This document shows positions 5,954 through 35,995 of a stretch of DNA of 63,849 bases, one piece after another. The notes under the pieces are model-generated. The model was not told where the DNA came from. It searched no databases and saw only the letters and a program-made list of their open reading frames with translations. Each line of letters begins with the position of its first letter. The stretch's first letter is position 1. The stretch covers positions 33,420,331-33,484,179 of the forward strand of contig NC_058133.1 in assembly GCF_016433145.1 (NCBI RefSeq), read 5' to 3'. The position numbers and the translations under genes were made by a program. The stretch is from Gracilinanus agilis (taxonomy: Eukaryota).

Positions 5954-8900
5954 ATGGGTCCGCCAGGCCTCCCGCTGGCCATCCTGCTCGGGCTGCTGGG
6001 GGCTTCCCTGGCCTTTGAGAACAAGACGAGGTTCTGCCAACCGGCTCCGATGTGGCAAGTGGACGGAGGCAGAGCCCCCATGGAGGAAGCCCGGGGCAAT
6101 GTGACAGTGGTGGCCCTCCTGAAGGCCAGCTGACACTTCTGTCTCAAGCAAGCTGCCAGGTATCGGGCATGACAGGGATGGTTTCAAGGGTGGGATGGGA
6201 CAAAACGCAGCAGCTCCAGGAGCCAAGGGGCCCAGGCTGGCCCAACGGGCTCCAAGAGAGCCAGACTAATGGTCAACTGAAACTGGGTCAAAACGCTCCA
6301 GCTCATCCTTATGAGCCATTGGGCGATGGCACAAAGCTCATTTTGAGCCTCAGTTTCCCCATATCACAGATGCTTATAGTTGGAAAGGACCTCAGCAGGA
6401 ATGAGAGCCTGCCCCCTCCCTATCCCAGAAACAAATGGGCCTTATTAGGGCAGCCTCTACTTGCAGACCTACAAGGATGGGGAGCTTACCACCTCTCAAA
6501 GTAGCCCATCCTACTCAGGGCCAGTTCTCTCTGCTAGGAAACTTTTCTAGACACCCAACTTCAGTCTGCTTCTCCCTTGGCTCCTGGTCTTGCCCTCTGA
6601 GGCTAAGCAGGACAAGGCTGGCCCCTCCTCCACAGGATGGCATCTCGAGCCCTTGAAGACGGGTATCCGCTGGGGAAGAGGGATCCTCCCTGAATCTTCT
6701 TGTTTCCAGGCCAAATGTCCCAGGTCCTTCCCTTGAGCTTCCCATGGCATGAACTCCAGGCCCTTCCCCATCTGCCTGCCCTCCTCTGGACTCTCTCCAG
6801 CTCACAGCCTTACTCTCACCTCCTCTGTCCTTCTGAATGGAGCCCCAGACATCATGAGTTTTTGCCTGCCTTAACACACTATTGTTTGGGGGCAGCTAGG
6901 TGGCTCTGTGGATAGAGCACCAGATCTGAAATAGGAAGTCCTGGGTTCAAATCTGATCTCAGATACTTCTCAGCTATGTGACCCTGGGTAAATCACTTAA
7001 CCCAATTGCATAGCCCTTACTGCTCTTGGTACTCAGATTCAGTATCAATTCTAAATCAGAAGTGAAGGGCTTAAAAATAACCCTAAACCCCAAATCATAC
7101 ACTTATATGAATGAGGCTGTGGTCCACCAGGACCACCAGATTTCTTCCAGACAGGTTGCCATTCATCCCATCCTGTCTCCCACTAGCCTAGACTTAGAAA
7201 GGTGTTTTTTGAACCCAACCTTATGACACTGGTCCCACTGAATTTTATCTCCTACCACTTCATGGGAGGCCGGGGTGAAGCAAGAGCCAGTGAGAGATGG
7301 GAAAAGGGTGAAGGGGAGGAGGAAGCTCTTGGGGAATGGCTTCAAGTCTCTCAGAAAAATAAATGGGAGGCCAGGTTCTCCACTAACCCAAGTCTGGCAC
7401 TCGATCTCCCAGAAGGGAGTCGTGTGGAAAACACTTGGCAGCCAGCACTTGGGCACGGCAGGAACAGGGCCCCGGCTTTCACGAGGCCTCCTGGCAGTTC
7501 TGAGCTGAGCCGCCCTCAGTGCCTTCCCCTTCCTGGGCCAGCCCCCACGAGCGCCCTACTTTCTGGGCCTCTGTTCCTTGCCTGTTCCCAGGCCCAAGCC
7601 AACAGTGGGTTTATTCAGTGAGAGAGGAAAGGGGGAGGAAGAAGAGTGGGCGTAGGGAACCTGACCCAGAAACGGGATCTTTCTGAAAAGTAAACCCTTC
7701 CTTCACTCAAGGGGTCAAACGGACTCCTAGCTTGAGGCCCTTCCATCCAGCTGCTTCCTCTGCCTCCTCGCAGACTTCCAAGGAGGCTCAGAAATCGTCG
7801 AGGCAAGCCACACACGCACAACCCCCCAAGATCCTTTTAAGAGGAGAAAATGGCGGCCTTGTCCAAGGACTCAAAGGAAAACCAAGGCAGGGCTGGGCCT
7901 TGGCTCCTTTTCTCAGCACTCTCCTGCCGGCAGAGGCTCTGAGGTCAAGGGGGAAAGGAGGCCCCCCGAGGCTCAGCTCACCCGTCCCTCCCTTTTCCTC
8001 CTCAGCATGGGCAGCTTGCAGGAGCGCCTGGCCCGGTTGGGCGCTGCCGACGTCCGTTTTATCATAGTCAATGAGAAGTCGCCTCAGTCCCTGGCCCTGC
8101 ACGGGGAGCTGGAACGCCATGCCCCGCCAGGCATCCCTGTCTACGGCCAACCAGGGCCTGGCCCTGACATCTGGAGCATCCTCAGCGGGGCCAAGGATGA
8201 CTTCCTTGTCTATGACAGGTGAGACCCCGCGGCGAGGGCCAGAGAGGGCGGCCAGAGATCCTGAGCGCATCGGGGGGAATCAGGCAGCCCAAGGCCATCC
8301 TGAGCCTCTTGGGGCCGGGTTGTCTGATGCCCAAACATCCCGCCACTGAGCTCTTCCTGGGGGCGCCTTTCTTCCATCTGGGCTGGCTGGATTTCCTCCT
8401 CCCCGGGGTTGCCAGGCCTCTCCTCCCTCCCTTTCCTTGACTTGGCGGAGCTGCCCCACATCCCGTGGATCGGCTGACTGATGCACAAGAAGGGCGCAGC
8501 CTCCTGATCCGCCGGCCCGGCCGCCGGCTTCTCCCTGTGCCCCACTATATAGGGCCGTGAGAAGGATGTAGAAAGACTCAGAGTCGGCAGCCGACCGAAG
8601 TTCTGAGGCAGCATGAATTTCCCGGCCTTGGGGGTGGGGGTGGGGGCAATCGAGCCTTGAGAAGGGAGGGGGCGACTTCCCCAAGAGGTGGGCATAGTCA
8701 GGGGGCCCCAGGAGGCCCTCAGAGCCTCCTAATCCCACCCCTCCTTTTGTGAATGAGGAAACAGGCCCAGGGAGACCCAGGGACTGTCTAAAGTCAAATG
8801 GCAGGAGCAGGGCCAGGGGTGGGATTCAGATTCAGGCCCTGGAACCCCGAGCCCAGCACGCTCCCCACCTCAGGCGGGCTGCTCCCCCACCTCTGTCTGT

Positions 8901-10298
8901 CCTCACAGGTGTGGCCGCCTGACCTTCCACATCCGGCTGCCCTTTAGCTTCCTGCACTTCCCCTACGTGGAGTCGGCCATTCGTTTCACCCACCGGCACG
9001 ATAGTTGTGGAAACTGTTCTTTCTACCCTGCCCAGGTGAGACCCCGGAAAGGGCATGGTTGGCGGGCAGCCACGGGCATCCAGGCCTGGTGGCCTGAGAA
9101 GCATCAGGCATCCTCATCAGTCGTCCCATCAGACGGCTTTATTTCCTAAATGGGCAAAGGACCAGGGACTTACCCAAGGTCACACAGACAGAGAGTAACC
9201 GAGTGAAAAGAGACTCCCCACCTTCCCTCCCCTGCTGAGCACTCAGAGCCCCCATACGGTCTCCCTGAGCTATCGAGGCTCAAGTCTCCTACATGGGGTG
9301 AGCTTGCCCGGCCTGGACCGTAGGATCTGCCCATCCTTCAGTGCCTACCTGGAACCTCTTCCTCAGGGGTCTCCCCTTCAGCTCTGTGGAGGGTATCCTG
9401 AGGTGAACCCTTTGTTCAGAGCCTGGGGCTGGCTCAGGCTGTCCTGGAGAAGGCGGCCTGCCTACAGGCAGCTTATGAGTAAATCCTCAGCGCCAGCTGG
9501 CTGCCCTAAGCTGGACACGTGGAGCCACCTTCTCCCACACTGGCCAGCACGACCACCCAGAGTGCTAGGGCAGAGGCGTCCTCGGCTCGAGGGGAGCCCA
9601 CAGGAGCAGCCCCAGCAGCGAGCGACCAGGAGGCAGCCACCAGGGAGCCCCCACACCCACCCCATTGCAGCTGGGGCAGTTTGTGATTTGGAATCTTGTC
9701 CTCTTCCGCCTGTGGGGTCTGAGGAGCGCCTCAGGGGTGCTCTGGGGATGACCAGGGACATTTCTCCTCATGCTTAGCCTTGCAGAGAAAAGGGAGATGG
9801 GGGTAATCCCGAACCCAGGGCCGCACTCCCCGAGTACCCATGGCGATAGAAGCTAGCTCCAAAACGGAGTCACACGTAGCAAGAGAGGGAAGACAAGGGA
9901 CCCCCTTCCCCTCGGACGCCCCAGGGAGCTGGTAGACTGGCTCGGCCCCAACTTTGGGGCCTTCTTACAGGCTCCCCCACCCCAACCCCATCATCCACTT
10001 TCTAGTCCAAGCTGTCTAGCAGGGATGTGTGAAGTCAGGGAGTGTCACCCTCTGGTTTCCTCTCTAGGTGAACAGCACGGACGAGGAGAAGGTGGCGTCC
10101 ACTCAGTCCCCTGGCCTAGAAGGCCAAGGGCAGGAGCCCCTGGGTGAGAAGCCCAGCAGCCACAGGCTGACTCTGTGGTCAAGCGCCCTTCGCACTGCCC
10201 ACCCCCGTGATCCTGTCCAGGGCCACAGCGAGAAGCCATCCCTCAGCCTTCCTCCACACAGCCTAGAGCCATCCCGCGACGAAGAGGCCACTGGATAA
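5954..10298 (+). CDS. SELENOP2: Selenoprotein P paralog (SELENOP2 / SelPb-like), 258 aa with one Sec. Coding exons 5954-6159, 8006-8218, 8909-9035, 10068-10298
   Basis: Signal peptide MGPPGLPLAILLGLLGASLA, then VTVVALLKAS-U-HFC (TGA 6131-6133, UxxC), KDDFLVYDRCGRLTFHIRLPFSFLHFPYVESAI and CGNCS, all SELENOP N-terminal domain hallmarks. All introns GT-AG with phases 2/2/0; exons sum to 777 nt; TAA at 10296-10298; SECIS downstream. Confidence 0.93.
6888..7080 (+). mobile_element. Marsupial SINE in SELENOP2 intron 1
   Basis: ggggcagctaggtggctc head, ggttcaaatc B box, CORE body. Confidence 0.85.
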
Positions 10299-10524: not shown

Positions 10525-10612
10525 CCTTCCCTCCCTCAATTAATGATGCCCACAGTGAAACCCAGAGAACTGGTCATTGTGGGCTGATGCCACACAGAGA
10601 GGAGGGAGGAGG
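10525..10612 (+). promoter_or_regulatory. SECIS element (type 2) in the SELENOP2 3' UTR
   Basis: ATGA core 10543-10546; helix II GCCCACAGTG (10548-10557) pairs with CATTGTGGGC (10575-10584); unpaired AAA 10558-10560; apical mini-stem CCAG-agaa-CTGG; GA at 10586-10587; helix I CTCCCTC/GAGGGAG. Confidence 0.93.

Positions 10613-24821: not shown

Positions 24822-35995
<11,174 letters not shown>

Follow-up and report, generated by a model that had tools for sequence, protein, structure and literature searches.

A stem-loop assembled across the first coding junction of marsupial SELENOP2 as a probable counterpart of the selenoprotein P element SRE1

Stem-loops located in the coding region just downstream of a UGA codon for selenocysteine (Sec) are known as Sec redefinition elements (SREs), and the one closest to the structure described here is SRE1, which was reported by Mariotti et al. 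in 2017 as a vertebrate-conserved stem-loop just 3' of SELENOP's first Sec UGA (PMC5727441; statements on this paper refer to the accessible portion of its text). The SRE1-bearing reporter fragment comprised codons 41-76 of mouse SELENOP, where mutations in the lower stem cut the recoding by up to 50% and those in the upper stem by 20-30%, while the compensatory mutations restored it. SRE1 was active in this reporter although it was intronless, and the products were uncoupled by StopGo sequences (PMC5727441). Herein, a hairpin at the corresponding site of the paralogous gene SELENOP2 (SelPb) is described from a 63,849-nt stretch of the Gracilinanus agilis genome (assembly GCF_016433145.1, contig NC_058133.1, positions 33,420,331 to 33,484,179 of the forward strand), which is termed the window and to which all coordinates refer. 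This hairpin is probably the SELENOP2 copy of SRE1, and its two arms are brought together by splicing.

A coding stem-loop shortly 3' of the Sec UGA is also present in SELENON (SEPN1), where it stimulates Sec insertion and inhibits termination (Howard et al. 2005, 2007, as cited in the accessible text of PMC8704476). The gene and the sequence are nevertheless unrelated to those of SELENOP2, and the two elements share no homology. The SELENON element is reported to stand closer to its UGA, at a spacing of roughly 6 nt, and we know of no report that it is split by an intron. The SRE and the SPUR of SELENOS are likewise mRNA structures beside a Sec UGA that influence its recoding, and an influence on splicing has also been suggested there; however, the UGA of SELENOS is the penultimate codon and the structure runs into the 3' untranslated region (UTR), which makes the architecture different, again with no homology.

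A second line of previous work concerns the intron rather than the fold. Wu et al. reported in 2016 that an intron 26 nt 3' of the first Sec codon (UGA1) is highly conserved in both Sepp1/SelP and SelPb, and it was considered ancestral because it is common to the two genes (PMC5133445; statements on this paper are limited to its searchable text). Since the exon junction complex would consequently adjoin UGA1, a tethering between eIF4A3 and the SECIS (Sec insertion sequence) was proposed, and intronless constructs were found to recode UGA1 still (PMC5133445).

In the window, the segments GCAAGCTGCC (6148-6157) and GGCAGCTTGC (8010-8019) are exact reverse complements, which make seven G-C and three A-U pairs. 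With the U of the Sec UGA numbered as position 1, each base i of the helix is paired with base 61-i, and the parts involved are as follows.

5954..6159, + strand: first coding exon of SELENOP2, between the ATG and the donor, covering Pfam SelP_N positions 2-36, with the GT at 6160
6131..6133, + strand: Sec codon UGA in the UxxC motif AS-U-HFC, the sole in-frame TGA of the SELENOP2 coding sequence (CDS)
6143..6145, + strand: 5' side (CUC) of a 3-bp lower helix, with a 2x2 internal loop between it and the main stem in the minimum free energy (MFE) fold of positions 13-48
6148..6157, + strand: 5' arm of the hairpin, GCAAGCUGCC, positions 18-27; exon 1 ends with this arm and then AG, followed by the GT
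6158..6159, + strand: first 2 nt (AG) of the apical loop, the last bases of exon 1
6160..8005, + strand: SELENOP2 intron, phase-2 GT-AG, 1846 nt, with a polypyrimidine tract and the AG at 8004-8005; the junction is a predicted one
8006..8009, + strand: last 4 nt (CAUG) of the apical loop, the first bases of exon 2
8006..8219, + strand: SELENOP2 coding exon 2, covering Pfam SelP_N positions 47-117 (E 1.7e-17)
8010..8019, + strand: 3' arm of the hairpin, GGCAGCUUGC, positions 34-43; exon 2 opens with C-AUG and continues into this arm
8022..8024, + strand: 3' side (GAG) of the lower helix, paired with 6143-6145

The spliced form is thus a 10-bp hairpin with a 6-nt loop, and the intron falls within that loop, starting exactly 26 nt past the UGA (spacing 6134-6159). 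The stem is set off from the UGA by a spacer of 14 nt, which shortens to 9 nt when the lower helix is counted, and RNAfold gives an energy of -18.8 kcal/mol for the ten pairs and of -23.1 kcal/mol together with the three pairs of the lower helix. All of these features, namely the arm coordinates, the perfect stem with its seven G-C pairs and the 14-nt spacer, are as a first-pass annotation of this DNA had placed them, and its figure of 1.85 kb between the arms in the pre-mRNA corresponds to a measured 1853 nt, with the arms in separate exons. Its description of the loop AGCATG as centred on the junction needs amendment, because the junction does lie inside the loop but off its centre, with 2 nt on one side and 4 nt on the other. 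The view that an SRE-like stem-loop stands 3' of a genuine Sec UGA was borne out by the UxxC motif, the homologous Sec position and the SECIS described below.

Such a structure is uncommon in its surroundings. Perfect hairpins of at least 10 bp occurred in none of the 1406 tiles of 90 nt taken from the window, and the hairpin is the only perfect one of at least 7 bp in the 777-nt CDS, where it falls in the most stable 46-nt segments. When the codons were resampled with the amino acids and the GC content of third codon positions (GC3) held fixed, the probability of an equal result for the window sequence was P = 0.002 when judged by the fold energy and P = 0.003 when judged by the pair run. This synonymous null, a GC3-weighted codon sampling, replaced a permutation restricted to the small pool of codons in the gene itself, which gave P = 0.016 and is a weak null because many permutations recreate the original sequence.

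The comparison was extended to the SELENOP family, for which DNA was recovered from 30 loci besides the window, designated by L numbers, so that it comprised 31 sequences; L013 covered the downstream exon only. An in-frame TGA occupies the Sec position in 31/31 of them, and the hairpin region is free of insertions and deletions throughout the family. The MFE fold includes the i+j=61 helix in 29/31 sequences, the exceptions being L025 and L030, and few of its pairs are kept in L009 and L031. A helix in the same register was found in a dasyurid, in 11 birds, in the SelPb of a catfish and in one further SELENOP2 transcript, and among SELENOP1 sequences it was found in those of mammals, other tetrapods and fish. 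Conservation in other marsupials or in sauropsids had been set beforehand as the test of the stem, and the stem stands since a loss of conservation there was not seen: the dasyurid and the 11 birds keep it with compensatory changes. RNAalifold, the check proposed by the same annotation, returned the junction hairpin as the consensus when both paralogs were folded together.

The individual sequences illustrate how the pairing has been maintained. In the dasyurid (L001) the hairpin reads CUGCAGGCUGCC-AGGAUA-GGCAGCCUGCAG, with a stem of at least 12 bp that is two pairs longer than that of the window, and the CAA/UUG of the window is replaced by CAG/CUG, which is a double synonymous compensatory change at pair 21:40 from A-U to G-C. 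The birds carry GCAGGCCC...GGGCCUGC, where, relative to the marsupials, pair 24:37 has turned from U-A to C-G and pair 25:36 from G-C to C-G, both via amino-acid replacements. The catfish SelPb has ACGCAGG...CCUGCGU. As for SELENOP1, the genomic and transcript copies of the cattle group share UGCAGG...CCUGCG together with a small upper stem (AUCY/GGAR), and the helix is also present in a rodent-like transcript, in another tetrapod and in fish, the last with 12 pairs formed by positions 13-24 and 37-48. The core GCARG:CYUGC (18-22:39-43) does not vary among the first 16 sequences and hardly varies among 27. In coding terms, its 5' strand consists of the last base of codon 6, all of the Gln codon and the opening base of the Ala codon, and this pairs with a 3' strand made up of the last base of codon 13, the whole Leu codon and the opening base of codon 15. 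Outside the core, the lower-helix pairs 13:48 and 14:47 are retained in most SELENOP2 sequences.

The statistics of the alignment agree with a selected helix. Canonical pairs make up 74-76% of the cells in the register and 19-44% in slid registers; both the covariation score and the percentage of paired cells exceed those of all 500 column shuffles, and the number of extra pair types was matched by only 4/500. Two or three pair types are seen at each of the pairs 16:45, 17:44 and 21:40, and double-sided changes have occurred in six pairs. Under the synonymous null, seven of the eight sequences tested gave P = 0.0003-0.07, the eighth being the bird L009 at 0.23, which stands outside the combined set, and the Fisher combination over six deep lineages was P = 2e-6.

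These data also bear on whether the helix might be a by-product of protein and codon constraint, in which Q-A...L-R/Q written in common GC-rich codons (CAG, GCC, CUG, CGG) would be self-complementary and the perfection of the marsupial stem would be a chance extension. The Q, A and L are indeed invariant or nearly so in the proteins, CUG and CAG are the commonest codons of GC-rich genes, and the synonymous null becomes marginal in very GC3-rich birds (P = 0.04-0.23). However, the helix is kept in AT-rich SELENOP1 mRNAs with a GC3 of 0.42, and third-codon bases within it stay fixed whatever the residue, with G18 retained in 24/25 sequences across seven amino acids, C39 in 22/25 across five, and G42 in 25/25. 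The compensatory double changes, some of them made through amino-acid replacement, and a combined P value obtained with the protein sequence already held constant by the null likewise speak against it, as does the rescue of recoding by compensatory mutants of SRE1 in the accessible text of PMC5727441, and this explanation is considered very improbable.

The correspondence between the helix and the published element was traced through the reporter fragment. The i+j=61 helix (positions 13-48) lies inside the codon 41-76 fragment, which extends to position 54, and the same fragment of the rodent-like SELENOP1 transcript folds into this helix; the SELENOP1 copy is very probably the published SRE1. 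With the same helix present in SELENOP1, the hairpin of SELENOP2 would extend a known element and not constitute a new mechanism. The two copies are alike in their site 3' of the UxxC UGA, in the helix register and in the ancestral intron, and they differ in that the copy in the window belongs to a paralog with one Sec and one SECIS and has a longer uninterrupted stem.

The placement of the intron was equally constant. A GT-AG intron in phase 2, exactly 26 nt past the UGA and within the loop, was present in 17/17 genomic loci, 14 of SELENOP2 (the window, the dasyurid, the 11 birds and the catfish) and three of SELENOP1 (one of the cattle group and two others). Assembled transcripts of the relatives run across the junction (L012, L015, L019, L021-L023 and L025). 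On the grounds of canonical splice signals, the matching intron in the 16 other loci and these spliced transcripts, the junction 6159^8006 in the window is probably correct. The length of intron 1 varies widely, from 47-154 nt in birds (L002-L011, L017) to 1.1-1.8 kb in marsupials.

This is the same intron as that of Wu et al., with the same 26-nt spacing and phase and in both paralogs; in contrast, the subject of their paper was the junction complex, and its searchable text holds no stem-loop assembled across the junction (PMC5133445). The accessible text of PMC5727441 and its 131-mRNA alignment do not mention SELENOP2 or SelPb, and exons and splicing are absent from that text, where intron boundaries appear only in the legend of Figure 1. 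That SELENOP2 carries the stem-loop, and that in both paralogs it spans the exon junction, therefore look undescribed in the searchable literature, in which we found no account for SELENOP2, as the first-pass annotation had supposed.

Another idea links the helix to splicing or the exon junction complex. In one version, the arms, whose distance is 2 nt to the 5' splice site and 4 nt to the 3' one, would bridge the splice sites; in the other, which follows the proposal of eIF4A3-SECIS tethering, the complex would be deposited 20-24 nt upstream of the junction, at positions 6-10 right after the UGA, and together with the hairpin would make Sec decoding in the pioneer round dependent on splicing. 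The identical place of the intron in the loop at all 17 loci of both paralogs is in keeping with such a link, as are the highly conserved, ancestral 26-nt spacing and the tethering proposed in the searchable text of PMC5133445. Pairing of the arms across the intron was nevertheless rejected for bird pre-mRNAs, since the predicted folds of eight birds with introns of 83-107 nt kept 0/8 arm pairs across the intron, and the marsupial arms are separated by as much as 1.1-1.8 kb. Moreover, the activity of SRE1 in an intronless reporter and the recoding of UGA1 by intronless constructs point away from a requirement for splicing, and it is spliced mRNA only that is translated. A tie of this kind is unlikely, and the coupling of splicing to Sec insertion suggested by the first-pass annotation found no support in these data. 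Also unlikely is the proposition that the intron in the SRE1 loop is functional and not a frozen accident, whereby the helix formed after ligation and a junction complex at positions 6-10 would have acted since before the duplication, in both paralogs, as a splicing-dependent module that sets the first-round decoding of the UGA, Sec versus termination or decay. Even so, a junction in the loop of the helix offers a handle on the published idea that the intron beside UGA1 matters for decoding.

On the whole of these comparisons, and by analogy with SELENOP, we assign a probability of roughly 0.68 to the reading that the hairpin is the SELENOP2 (SelPb) copy of the ancient selenoprotein P stem-loop SRE1 and raises Sec insertion. 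The local hairpin would then exist only in the spliced mRNA, with the ancestral phase-2 intron in its apical loop, and by extension from SRE1 it would sit just ahead of the ribosome while the UGA is in the A site, where the lower helix may bring the base of the structure to 9 nt past the UGA. Under the direction of the SECIS in the 3' UTR, the share of ribosomes that insert Sec would rise and that of terminating ribosomes would fall.

The distance between the UGA and the stem may also be taken to suggest that the hairpin acts after decoding, either as a pause during which the UxxC redox centre folds or events at the signal peptide and the endoplasmic reticulum (ER) take place, or through mRNA stability or nonsense-mediated decay. 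With a stem about 14 nt past the UGA, ribosome footprint geometry implies that unwinding would begin only when decoding has moved one to three codons beyond the UGA, and two further exon junctions follow downstream of the UGA, from which sensitivity to nonsense-mediated decay is predicted. Against this stands the homologous SELENOP1 element, whose measured effect in the StopGo reporter was on the recoding ratio (accessible text of PMC5727441), and a role after decoding appears quite improbable.

Several points weigh against the assignment to SRE1 and against a stimulatory role. Recoding stimulators are usually spaced at 6-9 nt; the stem starts at 14 nt, or at 9 nt if the weak lower helix is included, and so stands on the limit of that range or past it. 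A mammalian SELENOP1 transcript, L025 (286-345; U-YFCILQSSS, with the codons CUA CAA UCA), no longer carries the core helix. At codon 13, where Ser pairs, Asn is present in the wombat protein, and from this residue, known from the protein only, an internal C-A mismatch is predicted, which makes the perfect stem not universal even in diprotodonts. Because the birds are near-identical, the independent lineages number about seven and not thirty. The junction in the window is a predicted one, the pair-by-pair identity with SRE1 as drawn in Figure 2D of PMC5727441 is deduced from the position and from there being only this conserved helix, and stimulation of recoding by the helix in SELENOP2, as opposed to SELENOP, is an inference by analogy from sequence data.

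If SRE1 is indeed shared, it extends from SELENOP to the single-Sec paralog, and the helix dates to at least the SELENOP1/SELENOP2 duplication at the vertebrate root. SELENOP2 would then be a cleaner system for the contribution of an SRE, because with one UGA and one SECIS there is neither a choice between SECIS elements nor an issue of processivity. The marsupial stems deserve particular attention in this respect. Folds of 60 nt gave -27 and -37 kcal/mol for the marsupial SELENOP2 sequences, about -15 to -20 kcal/mol for the tetrapod SELENOP1 sequences that keep the helix, and -26 to -31 kcal/mol for fish SELENOP1; within the tetrapod set the marsupial stems, which run through 10-17 pairs without a break, are the strongest by a wide margin. 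This strength arises because the upper half is fully paired, whereas elsewhere the stem is interrupted or the loop has 10-16 nt, and the strong marsupial stem represents a natural high-stability variant. At the other end, L025 is a natural SELENOP1 variant without the core helix and is of interest for a possibly lower recoding of UGA1.

The gene that houses the hairpin is intact in the window, where SELENOP2 occupies the + strand with four coding exons and 258 codons. Downstream of the parts given above, its remaining features are as follows.

8910..9035, + strand: SELENOP2 coding exon 3 (CGRLTFH...FYPAQ), covering SelP_N positions 118-155
10068..10298, + strand: last coding exon of SELENOP2 with the stop codon, without a Sec-rich tail and collinear with the wombat protein P0001
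10533..10601, + strand: SECIS in the 3' UTR, a full-length match to Rfam RF00031 (SECIS_1) with 27.4 bits and E 0.0076, showing the AUGA, AA and UGAU motifs

A single SECIS match in the window, a single Sec in a UxxC motif and pieces of the thioredoxin-like SelP_N domain on either side of the UGA were found, which identify the gene as SELENOP2/SelPb. An Rfam scan of the whole window at the gathering threshold gave no match, and the SECIS at 10533-10601 is missed at that setting because the gathering score of 35 exceeds its 27.4 bits. With exon 2 as the HMMER query, 120 SELENOP-family proteins were retrieved, the closest being a wombat SelP_N-domain protein (85% identity) and a koala protein named 'selenoprotein Pb-like'; a separate, length-filtered homologue search with the same exon gave no candidates. 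The dasyurid ortholog L001 adjoins URO-D, and the occurrence of SELENOP2 in marsupials, together with its loss in Eutheria, has been reported (bioRxiv 10.1101/2025.05.29.656587). Cys-converted forms of SELENOP2 occur in frogs (Anura) and sharks (Selachii).

Two further structures were considered in the CDS. A counterpart in SELENOP2 of the 'initiation stem loop' (ISL) found at the 5' end of the SELENOP CDS was not supported, as the start of the CDS (5954-6073) showed no excess folding stability over dinucleotide shuffles in a crude test (z = +0.92). Directly 3' of the junction hairpin, a second GC-rich hairpin (GGAGCGCCUGGC...GUUGGGCGCU.CC) with about -17 kcal/mol occupies 8021-8048 of the window; it was discarded as a conserved element, being absent from the other SELENOP2 sequences, with an alifold energy of -0.7. 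Runs of N, either assembly gaps or masked sequence, are located at 25756-25954, 27214 and 30782-30829 of the window.

The annotation of SELENOP2 in databases was found to be systematically wrong, in that the bird proteins are fragments of 47 amino acids and many other models skip or truncate the region of the UGA. Among the most distant sequences, two metagenomic SELENOP-like loci with the motif W-U-xxC, L030 (3971-4030) and L031 (TGA at about 1443), do not form the i+j=61 helix as such, and each has another hairpin of 7-8 bp with a 3-nt loop, beginning 11-13 nt past the UGA and centred on CAGGCUG (Gln-Ala), which hints at recurrent selection for some structure at such a distance. Three SELENOP-like transcripts on environmental metatranscriptome contigs (L026, L027 and L029; U-[HG]FCL[ST]QA...EAMR) carry an 11-bp lower helix in the vertebrate register, formed by positions 10-20 and 41-51, and should their source be non-vertebrate, this would hint that the helix is older than the split of SELENOP1 and SELENOP2.

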